Source of the DNA: Marsupella aquatica | Lineage: Eukaryota > Plantae > Marchantiophyta | Reading direction: 5' to 3' | NCBI GenBank assembly: GCA_973895155.1 | Contig: OZ316899.1 | Span: forward strand, 372,001-436,000 | Length of the DNA: 64,000 nt | Shown: positions 3,656 to 64,000 of the stretch, in pieces | How the letters are laid out: each line of letters begins with the position of its first letter | How positions within the stretch are numbered: position 1 is the first letter of the stretch | Notes under the pieces: generated by a model | The model's database searches: none | What the model was told of the DNA's origin: nothing | What the model saw: the letters and a program-made list of their open reading frames with translations, nothing else | Program-made: the position numbers and the translations under genes

Positions 3656-6297
3656 ATGTCGCACACGATCCTCTCCAGCTCGGCCATTCGATTCTGGACG
3701 CAGTTCCTATCTACCGGAAGGCACTTGGCCGACTCATTGAAACACGCCAACCCGTGCCGATACGAAATCGAACGCGAGTACGAGAGAGTCATCCGCCTAG
3801 CAGGACGACACCACTACATCCTTAACTTTGACTACCCGTCTCAGAGCGAGCTTTATCGACCAGCAGAGGTATCCGGGTACTTCTTCAACGGAGACAAATA
3901 TATCGGGTTCTAGGAAGCATTGCTTCGGCTTCCGGACGAGGTCTTCAATATCCCGGGTATGATCGACTTGCAATGACATCACTTTGACCACATTCCTGCT
4001 CAGGTTCGGGCTATCATCAACAGCGAGTCCAGCACTACCCGTTCGACAAGGTCGTCTGCACTCGCTTCGGAGAACTTCTACCAGCACCTATAGAGCTTCA
4101 TAGGAACTCGGCCAGCAACCAACATGACCAACTCAGTCGTACCCGTACTCGTACCCGTACCCATACAACCTCAAGCTCAGCTTCAGCTTCAGCCTCAGCC
4201 GTAGCCTAGCCAAACCCCACCACCGATCGCCCAGCCAGCACAAGTACGCTCCGTCATCAACGCTGTGGATCTTAGCGATGACAACAAGACTACCCTACCC
4301 TTGACCAGGCGGCCCAGAGGAACAAGCGCTCAGGGGGCCGACACTATATCGTGCCCACCCCCTGCTCTGATCCTAGGAGCGGCCCCGGCAGACAACATGG
4401 TGACCGTGGCCGACCCGGGCCCGTTACTAACGGCAGTGGCACTACCCAGGCCCGATCGGGAGGATGGGGAGGTGTCACCTTCCCCGAGCCAGTCATGGGG
4501 GAAGAAGAGGAAGGAATCCGCCACTGCATCCGGGTTACCGTTGGCCACGGTAGCCGTGGCCAAGGTGACGATGCACCGCATGGGGGAAAACGTTCACAAA
4601 AACATCCTCCATCCCAAGCATGCGGTGTACCTGAAGACTCAGGGATTCGAGCACCTCGCCTCCCTCCCCTGGAACACTTGCAGGTACTACGGGGAGGACA
4701 TGACGGAGTTCGTCAGGAATTATGACGACGCGCGTCAACATACTCGGCTACGGGGAAGGAGTATGTCCCTCACGGAAGAACGGCTCAGGATGATCTTCGG
4801 GTTACCCGAAGGTGACCATCGAGTCGAATCACGGGCTCCCGGGGGCAAGGGAGCCAAGTACCAATCTTCAAGTTTTCCCTCAGAGGGAGTAGTGGACAAC
4901 GGGTTCGTGATGAAGACCTGCCTCATCCCCGAGATAGCTGAGCGACTGGAGTTCCAGAGGTACGCCCTCCACATGATGGAACCCCGGGGGGAGATCTCCG
5001 CCGCCCAGGTTATCCAGGTCGAGAACTATCGACCTAGGAGGTGGGCGTCGTACTTCGCTAAGAAATTCCATGAAGAGATGGAGCGGCGAAGGAAGACGCT
5101 GTACATTGGCGGGAAGGCGTATTTCGCTAGCCACATCGAGATCATTCTTGAGTGGTACGCCCGGTTTGATCGACGAACCCTTCCCCGTGTCAACGTTACA
5201 AAGCTGGTCCCAGCTAGGTGGGTTTTCCCGGCCTTGGAGAGACGGCCCCAACCCGAGGCCCAAAGTCCAGCGGACACGCCAGCTTCACCCACCCCACCTC
5301 CACAAGTAGCTGTAGTCGTAACCAAAGAGGTACCGGATGGGTCGGTCGTTGCAACCGTTGATGCGACCCAACAAGTCGGGCTAAGTACAGAAGTCGGTAC
5401 GACGGAGGTCTTACCCGAGCCAGGGTCTCCCAAAGACCCACCGGTGGCTATTCCGGAGAACCGGACATTGCTGCAGGAGGACACTCCAGCCCCTTCCAAC
5501 GTTACGTCCCCAGGGCTGGACGTCACTGCCCCGGCCCCCGCGCATGTTGATGTCTGCCGTGCCCAACTCCGGACAGGCACAACCTGGACCACCCGGAACT
5601 CTTCGTACCGGGTACATTTCTGAACGGGCTTCTGGGAGATTTCTCTCATCAAATTGCCCGGGATACCGGGGAGTTCATGGCCCGGAAGGTAGCCTGTTTC
5701 TTCAATCAGGAGTTGGTTGCCGTAGTAAAGGCAGGTCGGGCCCAGTCAGAGGCCCTTCAGAGGATAGAGCGGTACCGGGTGGAGTCCGTGTACCTAAAGA
5801 ATGAAGTTGCGGCTCAAGAGGCTGAGCTTCTGCAACTACGACCCAAGGTTGCAGCCGCCGATGAGTTGTTAGCAAAGGCGCACGCTCTTACCGCCCTAGC
5901 CGAACAGGCCAAAGCTGGGAACGAGGCCGAGATTACACGACTCCGGAACCAGATTGACAGTTTGAAGAATCAAACTGTCACCTGGCAGAAAGACCTGGAG
6001 GAGGCCGAGGAACGGGCCCAACGGGACACGGCGGAGATAGCCACGCTGCAGGCCGAGGTGGCGCGGCTCCAAACCGAGGCCGAGAAGCAGGACCAGCTGG
6101 CGGGTAAACTGACAAGTGACGCCCAGCAGCTGGAGGAGGCTTGTCAAGAGGCAGCAGAGGAGACGGACGCGGCGAGGCGAGAGAACGAATCTCTGTTGGA
6201 CCAGGTCCAGCTCCTCAAGGCGGACAATGACAGGCTTCAAAGGCAGCGGGATGGCCGCTCCCATTCGGGCGGCTCTGGCAAGCGTGCCAGGCATTAG
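3656..6297 (+). pseudogene. Extra 3' ORF of the gypsy element (plant-transposon-protein-like domain plus C-terminal coiled coil), disrupted
   Basis: TATAAAAG at ~3550. ATG 3656 is in frame with ORF 4265-5623 across several TAG/TGA stops, then a frameshift near 5570 joins the coiled-coil ORF ending at 6297. The motif EFVRNYD...LRGRSMSLTEERLRMIFGLP resembles extra-ORF proteins of Athila/Tat-type elements (family call by eye). Confidence 0.65.
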
Positions 6298-54800: not shown

Positions 54801-54867
54801 AAAAGGAGCAGGTCCACTACTTTGCATCTGTGCTTTTAGCTTCATTCACTACAACACTACCGACCCC

Positions 54868-55270
54868 TTTTGCGAACCCCGTCCCATCGCAACTAACAAA
54901 GGACCAAATTATGAAATTCTGGCGTTTGCGAAACGCTACGCATCGCAACCCTTTCGCATTCTTTGAAACCCACAGCTTCGCAATCGGACTTTCGCAACCC
55001 CTTTGCAACACCTTCGCACACTGCAAAACTTATTTTATCGCACATAAATCACATTTATGCGATCTCGACAGACTCTTTATCGGTTTGCAACGCGCTCTGA
55101 ACTATAACTTATTTGCGAAGTTGTTGTCTTGACAATTCTGTTGCCATTCATATGGTATCACATAACTGCGTCAGTCAGGGTGTCGCACAATTGCGGAACC
55201 AAAAGTATCGCAATGTTCCAATACTCAATGTATGGCAAGTTTGCGATAGTATGGCGTTTGCATGTGTTTC
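54868..55270. repeat. CACTA left subterminal repeat array (TTGCGAA/TTCGCAA, both orientations)
   Basis: Many copies, e.g. TTTGCGAAC, TTTGCGAAAC, TTCGCAATC, TTTCGCAAC, TTTGCGAAG. Confidence 0.85.
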
Positions 55271-55491
55271 GCAAGGATAGTTTGAGGGCTGGGTTTTGTA
55301 TATTTGGGTTCATAATTGGGTTGGGGTCTTATTGCTCCACATGAAGATACCAAAGCAAAACTTTATATATGCCAAAAATCCCTGAATGTACAAAAATTAG
55401 GGTTTTCTAAAACCCTATGGGGTATCAAATACCAAGACACTGTCCTTTGACTAATCCATATGCCATATGGAGTGAACTACATCTGCATCCT

Positions 55492-57510
55492 CTAGAATGG
55501 AGCCCGCCTACTCCTCTTTGCTGGCCTCTTCCCCTTGTCCTTCTTGCTTTGGGCGGGACGAGCTGGACGAGAGGGGGGTGGTGGTGGTGGTGGCGGTGGT
55601 GGTGGTGCCTGCTGCTCCTCCCCATCTGGCTCATCCTCATCATCGTCATCATCCTCATCATCATCCTCCTGGTCTCCTGGTGTGCTAGGTGTGGCAGCAC
55701 TCCCTGCCCCTCTGGACCCACTCGTGGTGGCCCCGGTAGTGTCCCCATCATCAGCGCCGCTATCCTCCTCACTGCTATCCTCACTCCCCTCCTGCTCCTC
55801 CTTATCCTGCTTCCATGTCACAAGATTAATTCGGGTTTAGGGTTAATAGGAAAAATGTATAAACCTTATAAATGGAATGGGTGCGGGTTTAGAAAGGGTA
55901 CTACAAATCACTCACACTAGCCAACTCTGCATCAACCAACTCAAAGAGATGTCTGGCCCCATGCTCTGCCCCTATCTCCATCTCCTTTGTTGTTATCTTG
56001 CGGCGGTACCTCTTATACTACCACAAAAAAATGAAACACCAAAACATAAGGGGCCCGGGTTAGTAACTAAGGGTACTTAAGCAAAAAAGGAATCCTAAAA
56101 AGGGTAAAAAGGGTACCCTAACCAGAAAAAAACCCCATTACCCTAACAAACATTTGTCACTCGACACTAAACGTTTTTCAAAATGAAACAAGCTTTGCGA
56201 AATAGACTGCGAATCGGATTGCTTCGCAATGGCTTCGCAAACCTTACGGGAAAAAGGTTATAATAGAGTTTGCGAAACAATTGCGAGGCAACCCGCTTCG
56301 CAATTGTTTCGCAAACTGTGCTTTTAAAAAAATCCAAGAAATGGCTAAGGCACGCAATGTGTCAGGGTGACCTAAAACGAAAGGGGAGGCCATAAGGGGT
56401 AAAGCAGAGGTCTGCGAGGGGCATTGCAGGCAAGCAAACAACAATTGAAGGCGAAGGAAAAGAAGCAGGGGAGGAGGGGAGAGGACTCACGAAGGTTGCT
56501 TTCAGGCCGGGAAGTCCACCTTGCCCCATCTTGTGTGTGGTCTTGGGGCGTTTGCTGACTCGGTCTGCTGCAAGGATGAACTTCTGGGGTGGTGTCCCCA
56601 CTTCATCCACGATGTGCTGCAGCTGAGAGACCTTCTCAGCCAATGCCTTGAGGTCTTTGTCTGACTTCCCGGCCTGAAGTGCCTTGGCCTCCTTCTCCTT
56701 CCAGAATTGGAGGTCCTTGGCTGCTTTTAGCTGCACCTCGACCTTATAGAACGCGTTCCACACATCCTCTGTAAATTGCACTGGCCTCCTCACGTTCCTG
56801 TACTCCTGCAAGCTTGCCAGGTAGGCCCTCACCTTCCTCCTATCATGGTATCGTGCTTGAGACATTGAATTCGAAATTCTATCTGCAAGCCACTGGTCAT
56901 CAATCTCTGCTCCATTTGTGAATGAATCTTTGACCTGAGTCATTACTTTCCTCTACTCTGCTCTGCTTAGTTTCCCCCACTCAACACCTCGTGCAAAGCT
57001 AGTCCTCACAGCAAGCCTGATAGTGCTCTTTGCCCCAGTGTAGGCCAACTCAGTAGGAATGCCCTCAACCAAGGCAATCAATGGCAACTTCTTCCTCTCT
57101 TCCTCCTTTTTCCGCTGCGCCTCACGTTGTGCTCGAATCTCATCTCGTTCCTCCCTTCTCCTCTTCTTTTCGAGGGCTACAGGAGAGAGTACTCCTGCCT
57201 TAGCCCTCTCCTCCTTCTTTCGTTTCTTCTCTCTGGCCTTCTCCTCAGCTGCAGCCTTTGCCTCTTTCTCCCTCTGAGCCTGCCCTGCTGCAACCCCGGT
57301 TTGCAAAGCTTGCCCTAGAATTGCACTCAAAGAAGCAATCCCAGTTGGTGTACTCAAATCCAAATGGCTCAGCTGTGTGGCATTGAGATGCTCGGCCATC
57401 AAATTCGTCCATTGATTACTCTCCTCATTCCTGTTCCCTCCATTGCCATTGCCACTCCCACTCCCACTTGCCCCTGCCCCATCCCCTCCACGCCCTCCAC
57501 TAGAATCCAT
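55492..57510 (-). pseudogene. Second CACTA gene (TnpA-like accessory protein, multi-exon, domain unrecognised)
   Basis: ORFs 56953-57510 and 56362-56943 are the same frame separated by one TAG. Likely donor GTGAGT at 56490, a probable small exon at ~55918-56010, and an acidic/Pro-rich C-terminus ending KKDKGKRPAKRSRR. Confidence 0.6.
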
Positions 57511-58080
57511 AGCTATCCAACACCAAGCGCGCGCAAGCTCTCCTCCTGCCCTCCCTCACTTCAAAAAACGTCGAATGGGCCTCGTAACCCGGTGGGAAGG
57601 TCCGAATGCCCAGACAAAACACATTTGCGACGCAGTTCGCATCGCAATTTGCGAATCAGCCCGCTTCGCAACTAGTATCTCAACTTTCCAAAACCAATGC
57701 GAAACCACACGCTTCGCAAAGCCTTCGCAAAGCTGCAGAGACGCGAAAAAACGCTCTCGGGTTCTATTTTTCCGAAGCTGTTGCGAAACATTTTGCTTCG
57801 CAAATAATGTGACCAAATTCTGAAGCAGGTCGGTTCTCAATATCGTGGCAATTCCTGGCGAAATTTTTTTCACATTCTTTCCCTCCTCCTTTTGTTTAGG
57901 CCATGTAAGTTATACTATGCCCTTTTGTGTAATTAAGAAATTCCGCCGTTTCAAATCCCGGCGTTTGTTAGGGTTGGGTCTTGGATGAAGCTGGTTTTTT
58001 TAGGGGTTAAAAGCGAGATTACCAGTCAAACCTTCCGTTTTTTAAGCTATACATGGTGTGGGTGTAGGCTAATTTTGATA

Positions 58081-58320
58081 AGAGTTGGGTTTTGGTTTAA
58101 AATTAATAAGTGAGGAAAGGGTTTAGGATTAAAGTTGGGTTTGGGTTTAGGGTTTAAGTCTTTAATTTTGGGTTTAAGCAGGGTTTGCATTTATGGTTGT
58201 AGGCTTTTAGGGTTCAAGCAAGGGTTTAGGGTTTAAAACAAAAGAGAGAAAGGGGATTGGGAGTGAGGGTCTAGGTTTTTGTAATAGGTCAGAGGTTTGG
58301 GGGTGAGGGTTTGGAAAAGG
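58081..58320. promoter_or_regulatory. Telo-box-like (TAGGGTTT/GGGTTT) cluster in the divergent promoter region of the CACTA element
   Basis: GGGTTTAGGATT, GGGTTTGGGTTTAGGGTTTAAG, AGGGTTTAGGGTTTAA and similar, between the divergent starts at 57510 (-) and 58864 (+). Confidence 0.45.
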
Positions 58321-58863
58321 CAAAGCAAGGTTAGATGAGATTAATGTTTTAGTTGTTTTACCATGGGTTTTATGGGTTTTAATGGGTTTTATGGATCTTT
58401 TGGGTTTTAATGGTTTTTCCATGGGTTTTATGCTAACAAAGGAGGAGGAGCTATGACAACTTGCAGGGTGCGGCACTTTTGCATGAATTGATACTAGCTA
58501 ATGCGTATGCATCGTATGAGCCCGGGCATCTGGAGGTACGGACTAAAATAGATGGGTCTAGTTAGGCTTATTCATGTAATTAAAACTTTTGGTTCCCACT
58601 ATCTATAAAGAGGACATGTATGTAAGGTGTTCGCTTTGTGTACTTGCAGCTTTTCTCATACTTCCAGATTCGGTTCATTATTTTAGAGCCACAAGACCTA
58701 TTGGCACCGCTGAGCCTGGGTCTCAGAAAGGTATTTTTTAGTGTTCCTTTTGTGTTTGGTTTCATGTCATCATTACTTGAGAACTTACATTTGTCCAGCT
58801 TGATATTGTGATGTTATTTGGTAATAACCCCTAACTTGCAAATTATACATCTTTGTAGGGGCA

Positions 58864-61800
58864 ATGTCTTCATCTTCTGAGATCTCCACCACAGATTCTT
58901 CCTCCTCCGATGAAGATATACCACCTCCTCCTCAACCTCACATGACTGCACCTCCTCCTCGTGGTCCACCCCGTCAGCTTTGCCAATGTGCCAAATGCGT
59001 GGGTCAGGTTTCCCAAAAGTCCTATATATGCACCCAGCATATTGAGAGATATGGACGTTACGGACGTCATACAACAGGGGCTTCCTCATCCCATGTGGTA
59101 AGTGTTTACGCCTTAGTTTCTACCCTATTTCCACATCGCAATGGTGAAGGTTTTTAATTTGACACCTCTTGTTGTTTGTTTTGGTTTGGATGGAATAGGT
59201 ATCTAGTAGGCCTAGACCTGCGGCATCAGCACCTTATGTCCCATCACAAGGTGTTCTAGATGCTATAGGCAATGCATTCTCACAAGCCTTGGGTCTAGCA
59301 ACAGCCCCCTCCAGTCCTAGGGCAGTTGGGGGTGAGCCTGTTGTCCCAAGAGGGAGAAAGCGTTCCAAGAGACGGCCCCGAGGGGATACTGATTTGTACA
59401 AGGCAGTGGTTACCGGTAGGTGGGGTGATTGTGAGTTTACTGGCAGATGTGTTCCTATCATCAAGGACTGGGATCCCCAGACTCTTGGTTTGCCACAAGA
59501 GCTTTCCTATGGTGAGGAGGTAGAGGTTGGGGAAGACGTTGGGTTATCAAACCTTCCACACTTGGGGATAGACATGGCTATGGAGTTTTTGCTTGTGAAG
59601 ACATCATTGTGGATACCGAGAGTGGTAGTGGTGGACGCAGTCGAGAAGGACCTACGTTGTTTCCTTATGGTGGACCCATCTACAAGAGAAGACATTGGAA
59701 CATGATCCTTGCACAACATCCTGAGTGGAAGACTTATGCCTTGGAGTTAGATACTTTTGATGGAAACACTAGGAGGTATAGTGAGCAGCGGGTGATAGAT
59801 GGGGACCCCATACGAACTGGGAATATAGCTGGTTTCATAAACAGTAATGTGGGGACTCGCCCCAAGCGTAGGCAAAATTGTGAGTGGGTTTTCATTGAGG
59901 GTCCTCCACCAGCCCCTTATGGCCAGACATATCATCATGACCATTGTCTGGTTGTAGCTACTAGGACCATTCACTCAGGTGATGAGTTGTTTACTCACTA
60001 TGTGTGGGATTAGAAAATGACCATACACATGGCGTTTGGCCACATTTTGTATTTACACCAGTACCGATATTATTTCATGTTTGCACACCCCCATATATTC
60101 TTCTACATGTTGTAACTATTTGCTTTGTAACTTTCAATTGTTTGCATTGTTTTTAGAATGTGCGACCCTCTCAAAATATGTTACCACGGAGATTGAGAGC
60201 AGCATATCGGGAAATGGGTATGCCGGAAGAAGGACAAGGCTCTGAGTCACATTCCTCATCAAGTGACAGTGGAAGCAACAACCCTGATCGCAATGTACCC
60301 AGAACATATGAACAGGTTATTGATGACCAAGATAGAGCCATGGATGATTTTATGGTTGATTGGTTTGGTGTTGACGTCCCTGGTGATGATGCTGAGGTGT
60401 CTGCTGATCAAGGAGGTCATGTGCCCCCCAATGATCCACGACCAAGACATACCCCCGAGGGACAGCGCCAATGGGAGGAAGCAGAGGAACATGCCCGAAC
60501 TCCTATCTATGAGGGTGCTCGTTTGAGTCATCTTTCTGTTATCTTGGGGTTGATGAATCTACAGGCCAAACACAAGGCAAGCAATGCCTTGTTATCTGAT
60601 ATGTTTGCACTTTGCCATGACCTTATGTTACCTTCTGGCAATGTGTTGCCAGGAACTTGGAAGGAGGCCAAGCGTGTTCTCTCATCAATTGGCATGGAAT
60701 ATCATATCATTCATGCATGTGTGAATGATTGCATGTTATTTCATGGGGCCGATGAGAAGAAGACACAGTGTACTGAATGTCATGAGCCACGATATGACCC
60801 CAACATGATTACAAAGAAGGTGCCAAGAAAAGTTGTTCGTTGGTTTCCCATCATTCCTCGGTTGTTGCACATGTACAGGTGTTCTGATTTGGCAGAGTTG
60901 ATGGTATGGCATAAGACTCATCGATCAGAGCCTGGTGTTATGCGGTTGCCAATTGACTCTCTTGCAGTCAAACATATTGAGGAAACATGGCCAGACTTTG
61001 CACATGATCCTCGTCATGTGAGGTTGGGATTGGCATCTGATGGGGTTAGTCCTCATGCCCTTGGAGGCAAGGGAAGACCTACATCAGTTTGGCCTGTGGT
61101 TGTGATGAATTACAACCTTCCACCATGGCTATCCATGAAGAAGGGGTTCCTCTTGCTGTCTTTGATTATTCCAGGTCCAAAAAAGGTGAAGAACTTTGAC
61201 ACTTATTTGGCACTATTGATTGGAGAACTCCAAAAACTGTGGGGTGGAGTGTGGGCATATGATGGCAGGAAAAATACAGGAGGCATTCCACGTGTATTTA
61301 AATTGAGAGGGGTAGTTTGTTGGACAATGCATGACTATCCTGGTAAGATGACTTTTTGACCATATGCCACCCTTCTTTGATATGCTCTTTAATATACTTG
61401 TTTGTCATGTGACAACCCTAACATTTAGTCTGGTTTTATTTTTGGTGTAACCAGGGTTTGGCTTTGTCTCTGGATTGCAAACTCAGGGGTACAAAGCTTG
61501 CTCCATCTGTGGTCCACAATTGCAAGATATGACAATTTGGTCCCCATGGCTTAGGAAGATTGTTTACATTGGGCATACAAAGTTTCTTCCGATGGGGCAT
61601 GAGATGAGGTCTGACCCACTTTTATTTTCCTCCTTTGACATGCCCCTTGGTGATATGCGGGAAATTCCGGAACCAACAACTTTTGGGCATTGGAAGTCAC
61701 TAGCTGATAGGGTGGCAGACCCTGATGATCCCCTCACCTTTGATGGTACTGGGTTGACGAGGTGGAGTATACTAGCCAGTTTGCCCTATTGGTCAGAGTT

Positions 61801-63573
61801 GAAGATCCGCCATCTTTTAGACCCCATGCACATAGAGGGAAATGTGGGGAAGGCGTTGATAGCTCATTTTATGGGGAGAAGGACACTAACTTCAGGGAGG
61901 CATGTGAAGAGTTGGAAATGCATCCAGATGTATGGGTACAAGTTGATCCTGCCACAGGTTTGGAACATCGTCCTTCTGCTCCTTGGGTGCTTAGTGTTGG
62001 CCAAAGACGTGAATTCCGGAATCGTATAGGGGAGATGCGGTTTCCTACAGGCTATGGTGCCAATTTGAGGAAAGCTTTTGGGATGGAGGACAATCACAAA
62101 TGGCCACGGTATCTCAAGACACATGACTATCACCGCTTATTGCAGCATATATTGCCAGTGGCAATTATAGGGTTGGGGACCAAAGAAGTGCAAGATGCCA
62201 TTTGGTCATTGGGTCGTTTGTTGAGATGGATATGCTCAAAGGAGATATATGTGGAAGAGATTCCTGGAATGGAGGTATTGGCTGCTGAGGTGGTTTGCAA
62301 GTTGGAGAAGGCCCTCCCTCCTTCCTTCTTTGATTGTCAGGTTCATTTACTTGTGCATCTTGTGAGGGAGGTTGTCATTGCTGGTCCAGTTCATTGTCGA
62401 TGGATGTACTGGCTTGAGCGTTACATGTCAGTCTTGAAGGCTTATGTACGTAACCGTGCACGAGTGGAGGGAAGCATAGCTATAGGATACTTGGCTGCAG
62501 AGAGCATGTTTTATTGTAGTAACATCTTGGCCACCATTGATCGGACTTTACCACGTACTTGGATGGAGGAGAGGCAAGAGGAGGAGGACCGTTTAACAGG
62601 AGCAACAAAAACACGCATGCTTACATCAACAGAGTGGACACAGTTGAATACATTCATGTTGAGTAATAGCAATGTCATGGATGAATGGAGGGAGTTTTAT
62701 GACAATGCCAAAAGAATGAGTCAAAGGGCAAGGATTTTTCCTAAGTTGCATGAGTTTATGAAGGAAAAGTTGGTTGAGTTGGATGGCATTTTGGCACAAG
62801 GAGGAGATGTCTCACAGTTTCCTACTATGACAAATGACATTCGGACCATTGTTCATGGCCCTTTGAGAGTGGTAACATCCAAGACGGCCATGTGGACCCA
62901 AGGGAGACACTTCAGGTTTCACTAGTTCCTAACCTTGTTTTTCATATTCATGTACTACTACTTAAGATATAGTAATCATTTTACTTAAGATAAGTGTGTT
63001 TTTCTCTTTTGGTATGAAAGGTTCCTCATAACATGATTAGTGTTTTTTGTGTAGTAGTAACAATATATGGGTCTTGTTAATTTCAGGATTTCTTCCCTTG
63101 ATGAGAAGAGGGCTCGTACTTTTGATTGTGGAGTTCAAGGGCAGTTTTGTCAGGACTCCCGGAGTAGCCGACATGACAGGAACATTGTTCGTGATGTTGT
63201 GCCACACTATGGGAAGATAGAGGAGATTTTGGTGGTCTCATATGACAACCAATCTAAGTTTGAGGAGTATGTCTTCAAGTGCAAGTGGTTCAAAGTGAAC
63301 CTTGTTGGTAATAATCGCACTGTACTCCAAGATGAGAGTGGGTTCACACGGTTGAGGACAAGTGCCACTAGTTTTCAAGCATCTCATTGGCAAACGTCAG
63401 AGCCATTTACTTTCCCATCTCACTTGGAGCAATGTTTCTACGTTCCATACCCCTTAGACCCAGAGTGGTCACTTGTCATCACATATGTGCCACGGTCTCG
63501 TTCCATTGTTTCAGACAAGCCAGACACTATTTTTGTGTCAGATGTAGAGGACATTGAAGGTGACCAAGTGTGA
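58864..63573 (+). pseudogene. CACTA transposase; predicted exons 58864-59097, 60157-61342, 61455-62915 and 63087-63573; frameshift near 61865
   Basis: IHACVNDCMLF, RLGLASDG, YNLPPW, HDYPG, HLLDPMHIEGNV (Transposase_21-like), LKTHDYH, HLLVHL...GPVHCRWMYWLERYM (DUF4218-like), HYGKIEEI...FKCKWF...EPF (DUF4216-like); GT-AG junctions keep the frame. Confidence 0.9.
59199..60013 (+). pseudogene. SET-domain exon in the first transposase intron (1-bp frameshift near 59575)
   Basis: GLSNLPHLG..HGYGVFACEDI...LFPYGG...GNIAGFINS...RQNCE...LVVATRTIHSGDELFTHY; the acceptor AG at 59197-59198 is in phase with the exon 1 donor. Confidence 0.8.
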
Positions 63574-64000
63574 GAGACACTTATGGATATTTAAACCAAA
63601 AATCTATATCATGGATTGTTCATGTTGTTTCTTAATTAATATTTCATACACCATTAGTGTGGTAGGTATTTTCATTTTGGACTCCTACTTTCAAAAGAGG
63701 TCATGCATATAAGTGACATGGGTACTCCCTCCCTTATCCCTCCTCCCTCTTTGAACCCAAACTCTCCTTCCTCTTCCAAAAACTCCATAGCTTTTTCTCC
63801 TCCCTCCCTCTTCGCTAAAGTCTCTCCTATTTTTAGTAAACCCTCTTTGGACTCCCTTCTTCCTCCGTCCCTCATCCACCTTCCAACTCCCTTCCTCCCC
63901 CTTTCACCTTTCACCTCCCTCCCTCCTCCTCCCCCATTCAAACTCTAACCTAGATGCACACACAAGTCTAACATAAACGTTTGCAAACTGTTTGCGAAAC

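Follow-up and report, generated by a model that had tools for sequence, protein, structure and literature searches.

We analysed a 64,000-nucleotide stretch of the liverwort Marsupella aquatica genome (GenBank assembly GCA_973895155.1, contig OZ316899.1, positions 372,001 to 436,000 of the forward strand), referred to here as the window. From position 54847 to beyond 64000, the window is occupied by a CACTA (En/Spm-type) transposon, a copy with slight decay that belongs to an autonomous family of bryophyte genomes. The copy contains a transposase, a conserved gene on the opposite strand and, between them, an exon for a SET domain. We find that the conserved, transposon-encoded SET protein is real, and that its first exon is probably shared with the transposase. 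The features of the element are collected in Table 1, in which L004 and L005 are loci from the leafy liverwort Calypogeia fissa and the moss Sphagnum jensenii, respectively.

Table 1. Features of the CACTA element, in positions of the 64,000-nucleotide window
Feature	Position	Strand	Basis or detail
5' terminal inverted repeat CACTACAACA, true left end	54847..54856	+	shared terminus at L004:5144 and L005:3788
5' subterminal TTGCGAA/TTCGCAA block	54870..55274	.	motif count
Conserved accessory gene, coiled-coil	56362..57510	-	open reading frames (ORFs); DNA conserved with L004 and L005
Internal TTGCGAA-type repeat block, between two divergent genes	57625..57815	.	motif count
Exon 1: start codon, Ser/Pro-rich leader, Cx1Cx2C...H zinc motif	58864..59097	+	234 nt, 78 codons
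Intron 1, poorly conserved, 3' end ATAG|G	59098..59198	+	locus comparison
SET exon: linker, pre-SET, SET core, stop at 60011-60013	59199..60013	+	Pfam SET, family alignment, fold
Spacer, poorly conserved, 3' end TTTTTAG; intronic if the transposase mRNA is spliced from exon 1	60014..60156	+	locus comparison
Transposase exons (Transposase_21, DUF4218, DUF4216)	60157..63573	+	Pfam on ORFs 60160-63573
3' subterminal TTGCGAA repeats, beginning	63975..64000	.	motif count; element end past window

The initial annotation, which was made from the DNA letters of the window, had called the element a CACTA transposon, and indeed the 5' CACTA terminus, the subterminal repeats and the Transposase_21, DUF4218 and DUF4216 domains are all present. 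The terminus CACTAC(A/T)ACA is common to the window (54847), L004, L005 and a locus from Riccia sorocarpa (L003), and it was by comparison with these relatives that the left end was fixed; the 3' end lies outside the window. In L005, the left end at 3788 is matched by a right terminus ...GTAGTAGTG (...TGTAGTAGTG) at L005:15621, with AAT on either flank, a 3-bp target site duplication typical of CACTA elements. Judged by analogy with L005, the right terminus of the Marsupella copy would lie ∼790 bp past the transposase stop. The motifs TTGCGAA and TTCGCAA occur 22 times in the window compared to 5.5 expected (four times), in clusters at 54870-55274, 56195-56315, 57625-57815 and from 63975 onward (motif at 63992), and subterminal enrichment of these motifs is likewise seen in L004 and L005.

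The reading frame of the SET exon opens at 59199 with VSSRPRP..., in phase with exon 1, and runs through a variable linker into a conserved pre-SET segment (GRWGDCEFTGRC..IIKDWDP, with GRWG-CEFTG kept in the family) and then the SET core. A basic KRSKRRPR patch in the linker, at ∼59355-59378, would resemble a nuclear localisation signal. The Pfam SET model (PF00856) matches 59516-60010 on the forward strand with 29.9 bits, above the gathering cut-off of 22.4, and the motifs by which a SET domain had been recognized in the initial annotation (GYGVFA, YGG, GNIAGFINS, and DELFTHY with the terminal Tyr, followed by VWD and the stop codon) are all found; the Pfam SET scores of relatives are borderline, from 19.0 to 22.9 bits. 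As had also been reported, a single missing base breaks the SET frame in this copy, but the site had been placed at ∼59575, about 48 nt off. The base is missing from the TT run at 59527-59528, where ...EEVEV in the frame of 59199 meets WGRRW... in the frame of 59516. All intact relatives read EV-WGRRW across the break, and genomic contigs of three public sequencing runs (X2, X3 and X4) have one more T behind 59526. The transposase has a similar frameshift near 61866 (overlapping ORFs 61475-62029 and 61762-62925), and an extra T behind 61866 in contigs of three public runs indicates other copies that are without this break. The window copy is inactive and unable to make the SET protein; besides the missing base at 59527-59528, its opposite-strand gene contains a stop and its transposase is frameshifted. 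It is a recently decayed member of a multicopy family; the multicopy read depth and the variant contigs in public runs fit many copies.

The SET exon must join an upstream coding exon: its frame starts directly at the acceptor, where the TAG of ATAG|G is in frame, no Met precedes the catalytic core, and yet the pre-SET segment is conserved. Exon 1 supplies a suitable partner. Its leader is followed by CQCAKCVGQVSQKSYICTQHIERYGRYG, the zinc region reads CQCAKC...HIERYGRYG, and GTAAGT follows directly after, such that both the zinc motif and the phase-0 donor noted in the initial annotation can be read directly from the sequence. The ATG of exon 1 is conserved, as is the phase-0 GTAAGT donor in four loci, and the ratio of nonsynonymous to synonymous substitution rates (dN/dS) of exon 1 is 0.18-0.25; the GTAAGT donor and the ATAG|G acceptor have been kept while the sequence of intron 1 diverged. 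Moreover, in the independently annotated gene models P0101 (Calypogeia) and P0103 (Sphagnum), exon 1 is joined to the SET exon at precisely the proposed junction. In Riccia (L003:10368-11837) and in a second family from run SRR33386717 (L002:433-1704), a single ORF of 423-501 amino acids, uninterrupted by an intron, spans the zinc motif, a long variable linker and the SET domain. We considered whether L002 might be a spliced cDNA, and rejected this since the contig continues through the spacer and the acceptor into the transposase exon, as expected of genomic DNA from a lineage without intron 1. The intron after exon 1 thus appears to be specific to the clade of the window, Calypogeia, Sphagnum and L001, or to have been lost elsewhere. 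We consider the product that joins exon 1 to the SET exon to be well supported.

To what does exon 1 itself correspond? A profile of exon-1 peptides aligned with the N-termini of CACTA transposases that bear the transposase-associated zinc domain (PF13963) with an hhalign probability of 91% (E 1e-6, 34 columns), and the aligned columns include the Cx1Cx2C...H core. In sister CACTA families, this zinc domain is continuous with the transposase. From these profile comparisons, exon 1 appears homologous to the core of the transposase-associated zinc domain.

The predicted structure has a SET fold. P0101, an intact relative of 351 amino acids that is 88% identical to the SET piece of the window, was modelled with AlphaFold on a 32-sequence family alignment, and, two short dips apart, most of residues 150-351 have a predicted local distance difference test score above 90. 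A Foldseek search of the PDB with this model gave a probability of 1.0 to LegAS4, SETD8, MLL1, ATXR5, G9a and NSD1, which agrees with the SET domain first called from motifs; the matches to Swiss-Prot models were KMT5A, ATXR5/6, SUVR3 and SUV39H1, and feature and structure searches of the Atlas returned SET clusters only. A phmmer search with the SET piece against PDB sequences found no match. In the family alignment, G209 and G211 (GxG) are invariant, Y348 is conserved in at least 90% of the 32 sequences, and the residues that are invariant or nearly so comprise GxG, LFPY-G--Y, GN-AG(Y/F)(I/M)NS, the Asn matching the PN motif and the Tyr of (D/E)EL---Y.

To place the SET protein among other proteins, we scanned 1.84 billion representative proteins with HMMER and found that only 90 clusters match the SET family, which is a small, separate SET lineage without close host homologues. 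One candidate, P0021 (2344 amino acids, 31 matched stretches), was discarded as an unrelated tandem-repeat protein with a spurious match. The named members come from Riccia sorocarpa, five Sphagnum species and Calypogeia fissa, and the Sphagnum cluster of P0103 has 360 member sequences. At least six lineages conserve the layout of zinc exon, SET exon and transposase, which is seen in Sphagnum, Calypogeia fissa, Riccia sorocarpa and contigs from peat metagenomes. In the window and L003-L008, the SET ORF and the transposase share a strand, with the SET ORF ∼150-370 nt upstream. In L006, L007 and L008-L010 it lies ∼200-290 nt upstream of a same-strand Transposase_21 ORF, with a SET protein 47-57% identical to the queries. 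The DNA of the window is 71-76% identical to the Calypogeia and Sphagnum loci over the opposite-strand gene, exon 1, the SET exon and the transposase. The SET gene lies within the transposon termini and is conserved across copies.

In the annotations of both the Calypogeia and the Sphagnum locus, the SET gene is the only model within 21 kb, the adjoining transposase is unannotated, and the SET model is named as an ordinary ‘SET domain-containing protein’. Transposon SET copies labelled as host genes in this manner will inflate and confuse surveys of bryophyte SET gene families.

The SET domain is under strong purifying selection. The dN/dS of the SET core is 0.085 between the window and Calypogeia (synonymous divergence, dS, of 0.80) and 0.156 between the window and Sphagnum (dS 0.81); it is 0.093 between the window and L001, at a dS of 2.3 that is near saturation. 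These values are below the 0.21 obtained for the first transposase exon (exon 3) between the window and Calypogeia, such that the SET protein is under stronger constraint than the N-terminal part of the element's own transposase. The linker before the SET core is less constrained (dN/dS 0.27-0.45). The exon that the initial annotation had found broken in one copy is intact at this position in relatives, and is conserved and under selection in several mosses and liverworts.

The window, L004 and L005 are about equidistant from one another, with SET-core dS of 0.80-0.89 and coding DNA identity of 71-76%. The moss and liverwort hosts split before the Devonian, and a dS of 0.80-0.89 looks low for that; horizontal transfer between bryophyte phyla is possible, as are very slow rates.

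The transposase exon, like the SET exon, gives signs of being continued from upstream. Its first exon opens exactly at the AG of 60155-60156 with NVRPSQNMLPRRLR, and the start of the transposase frame coincides with a TAG| or CAG| acceptor in eight lineages, with a conserved (L)P(R/K)R(L/A)R--Y (LPRRLR-type) motif within a few codons of it. In L007 and L008, this motif lies ∼20 codons ahead of the first Met, and at the position of the Met in others, the Riccia transposase model P0161 has Ile. From the acceptor to the Met, the codons of the window, Calypogeia and Sphagnum (N-x-R-P-S) differ by synonymous changes. Since the residues before the Met are conserved and the frame opens at the acceptor, the transposase exon is likely to be translated from upstream, and exon 1 is the sole candidate seen, because no other conserved coding exon upstream has a compatible donor. 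Joining is possible to either acceptor, as the initial annotation had pointed out: the acceptors AG|G (59198|59199) and AG|A (60156|60157) each continue the frame of exon 1 in phase 0, and the three splice boundaries are all phase 0 in the window, L004, L005, L007 and L008. The stop codon of the SET exon is conserved, and no conserved donor is found in that exon. The comparison of loci therefore indicates that both the SET exon and the transposase exon need an upstream coding exon. The Transposase_21, DUF4218 and DUF4216 combination is also found in homologues across plants.

We favour a model in which exon 1 is common to the SET protein and the transposase, and regard it as rather probable, well short of certain. 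There are several points that weigh against it. The claim of alternative splicing from a shared exon 1 has gained comparative backing, but no splice joints were found in the runs that hold the sequence: in all four (X1-X4), the introns are evenly covered, as with genomic DNA, and a search restricted to RNA-Seq libraries listed none with the sequence. An ORF joining exon 1 to the transposase was sought among Logan and metagenome ORFs and 239 transposase homologues and none was found; the ORF calls for the transposases of close relatives begin inside exon 3. In the Riccia and L002 lineages, a shared exon would require an internal donor, for which there are weak candidates only. The SET isoform has no conserved polyadenylation signal or donor past its stop codon, and Pfam Transpos_assoc (PF13963) gave no match to exon 1 at E values up to 1. 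The two genes might instead be adjacent and separate, with a SET transcript that ends in the 143-nt spacer, a transposase that is transcribed or translated independently from ATG 60178 and an exon 1 that is unshared. The absence of splice joints from the runs would fit this; in addition, a Met lies at most eight codons from the acceptor in the window, L004, L005 and L006, and gene callers start the transposase of metagenome contigs at that Met. However, amino-acid conservation starts at the AG acceptor and not at the Met, the motif of L007 and L008 and the Ile of P0161 are at odds with initiation there, and sister CACTA transposases have an exon-1-type zinc motif at their own N-terminus. We thus think two separate genes unlikely, while granting the idea some weight. 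Far less weight falls on a fusion of exon 1, SET and transposase in one protein, through splicing or read-through before the SET stop. The Riccia model P0033 does join a partial SET to a transposase, and the window has a phase-0 GT at TAT|GTGTGG just ahead of the stop, but across Calypogeia, Sphagnum and L001 the stop codon is conserved and this GT is not, and P0033 is without the N-terminal half of SET and looks like a model built on a degenerate copy; a fusion is accordingly very improbable.

Even if exon 1 is shared, the SET domain itself might be without function or without catalytic activity. CACTA elements are known to capture fragments of host genes, and the frameshift of the window copy would suit a host SET fragment captured by one CACTA lineage (transduplication, in the style of Pack-type elements) and carried as a functionless passenger. 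Such a passenger would not be expected to show a uniform layout across mosses, liverworts and metagenome contigs with SET identities of 47-57%, a dN/dS of 0.09-0.16 at a dS of 0.8 or intact reading across the break in other copies, and no close host homologue is found among the 90 clusters from 1.84 billion proteins. A dead captured gene fragment is excluded. A conserved but non-catalytic domain, serving as a binding module or decoy for histone tails or a host methyltransferase partner, is a more serious alternative. The Asn-His of (R/G)F(I/L)NHS is not retained: at least 90% of members have Ser in place of the NHS His, giving (Y/F)(I/M)NS, and a few members have Gln for the Asn. The NS in place of NH and the kept terminal Tyr, observed first in the window copy, are thus properties of the whole family. 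Approximately 10 mostly basic residues are inserted between NS and the PN-type Asn (QNCEW in the window), within the pseudoknot-forming loop of the SET domain, and the family profile matches solved SET enzymes marginally, with E values of 0.03 or worse. These features count against catalysis, which is not assured because the similarity to solved SET enzymes is marginal. On the other side, there is little or no variation at the GxG, the YxG-type Tyr and Gly, the PN-type Asn and the C-terminal Tyr of ELxxxY, the predicted fold matches that of active enzymes, and PRDM9 is active despite a Cys at the position of the NHS His. A purely non-catalytic role therefore seems to us doubtful, though a less distant prospect than separate genes, and we infer that the SET protein acts as a nuclear lysine methyltransferase.

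The opposite-strand gene is also conserved in the family. The window copy has an in-frame stop at 56953-56955, and the Calypogeia locus has an intact ORF of 374 amino acids (L004:6861-7985). The protein has a Gly-rich N-terminus, a Lys/Glu-rich coiled coil and a conserved C-terminal half that extends to ...GQGGLPGLKATF, and a GTGAGT donor follows ...LKATF near 56487; its dN/dS is 0.23. Searches of Pfam and the Atlas for a domain or relative gave nothing usable. The gene may encode a TnpA-like DNA-binding partner. Between the 5' subterminal repeats and this gene, there is an acidic, Pro/Gly-rich ORF (55474-55820 on the reverse strand), with a similar acidic ORF at L005:4747-5052; it may be a further exon of the opposite-strand gene.

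Two candidate termini were set aside. The first guess at the left end, position 56165 (CACTAAACG), was ruled out by the CACTAC(A/T)ACA terminus shared with the Calypogeia, Sphagnum and Riccia loci, and a Triticeae-type terminus, CACTACAAGAAAA, had matches at chance level only. The sequence at 56165-56183, CACTAAACGTTTTTCAAAA followed by TTGCGAA repeats, has the look of a CACTA end, but it is inside the element and probably in an intron of the opposite-strand gene; the resemblance may be due to chance or may be a relic of internal rearrangement. A GGGTTT-rich stretch at 58080-58430 (15 GGGTTT in 1 kb, with two exact telobox-like TAGGGTTT sequences) lies downstream of the internal repeat block and ahead of exon 1, in the place expected for the promoter or 5' untranslated region of the SET/transposase unit; no sequence conservation of this stretch was found in L004 or L005.

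Taken together, these results suggest how the element might work. Besides the transposase and the conserved opposite-strand gene, the family encodes a SET-domain protein of ∼345 amino acids, made up of exon 1 with its start codon and zinc motif, the linker with its basic, nuclear localisation signal-like patch, and a divergent SET domain. Two acceptors, that of the SET exon and that of the transposase exon beyond it, would be open to the phase-0 donor of exon 1, such that one promoter and one first exon would give rise to two proteins with a common N-terminal zinc module. Both splice forms would then exist as RNA. A likely history is that the SET segment was acquired just downstream of the zinc exon of the transposase. 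The SET protein might then act on chromatin or on transposition proteins to the benefit of the element, possibly guided by the shared zinc module, and it may thereby affect silencing. More specifically, the zinc exon might target both products to the TTGCGAA subterminal repeats, and the SET domain might write a histone lysine mark that shields the element or licenses its transposition; we offer this last scheme as speculation, which we think improbable as a whole. If it were true, the SET protein would be the first land-plant transposon factor to counter silencing via histone methylation, and would be produced by an En/Spm-like splice switch.

Few transposons carry chromatin-modifying enzymes of their own, and those that do give a direct view of the ways in which mobile DNA fights or exploits host silencing. 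If the SET protein is active, the family provides a tractable system, because intact copies are found in Sphagnum, Calypogeia and Riccia and transformable bryophyte models exist, and it could reveal on which lysine, of a histone or another protein, a transposon seeks methylation, and to what end.

The organization of the family is best compared with that of maize En/Spm, in which TnpA and TnpD share a first exon through alternative splicing. Like En/Spm, the bryophyte elements have CACTA termini, subterminal repeats and a Transposase_21-type transposase, and they would resemble it further in having one transcription unit with a first exon common to two proteins. They differ in that the second product is a SET protein and not a TnpA-type binder of subterminal repeats, that the shared exon is coding and contains a zinc motif, and that a separate conserved gene is present on the opposite strand. 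With respect to known SET proteins, the best structural matches of the modelled domain are SETD8/KMT5A, ATXR5/6 and Legionella LegAS4. The target-normalised template modelling score is ∼0.45-0.6 against SETD8 and ATXR5 and 0.24-0.25 against the much longer LegAS4. Unlike the modelled domain, these enzymes have the NHS His and are without the loop insertion in motif III and the family-specific pre-SET segment, and the identity to them is only 14-24%.

Two known proteins are related in arrangement or in presumed role. SETMAR (Metnase) of anthropoid primates is a single-copy host SET gene that captured a dead mariner transposase and encodes a fusion protein (PMC8704517). SET and transposase are linked there in one transcription unit, as they would be in the bryophyte element, but in the bryophytes a mobile, multicopy element carries the SET domain, and the two domains are apparently alternative, unfused products. 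VANC of the Arabidopsis VANDAL elements (MuDR) is a transposon-encoded anti-silencing protein (cited in PMC12730594). The likeness is a functional analogy only, between transposon-encoded accessory proteins thought to act on the epigenetic state of their own family; VANC has no SET domain and works through DNA hypomethylation.

Accessory SET genes have been described in other DNA transposons. The HarbingerS and MuDR families of Phytophthora carry SET genes (Kojima & Jurka 2014, as cited in PMC12730594), Helitrons have captured SET domains, and in red algae the PAG2 protein of Plavaka elements, which also belong to the EnSpm/CACTA superfamily, combines a DNA methylase with SET (bioRxiv 10.1101/2025.02.11.637652). 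The likeness of the bryophyte SET gene to those of HarbingerS, MuDR, Helitron and PAG2 is one of description, a SET gene carried by a DNA transposon as an accessory function. The hosts are land plants, while those of HarbingerS, MuDR and Plavaka are oomycetes and red algae, and the transposons are of other superfamilies or lineages. A search of the literature, with Repbase outside its scope, turned up no account of a CACTA family, from bryophytes or other land plants, that has a SET product. Thus, transposon-borne SET genes are already known, and it is the bryophyte CACTA form that appears new: PAG2 is a separate gene, whereas the bryophyte SET domain would follow the transposase zinc exon within the transcription unit of the transposase itself.

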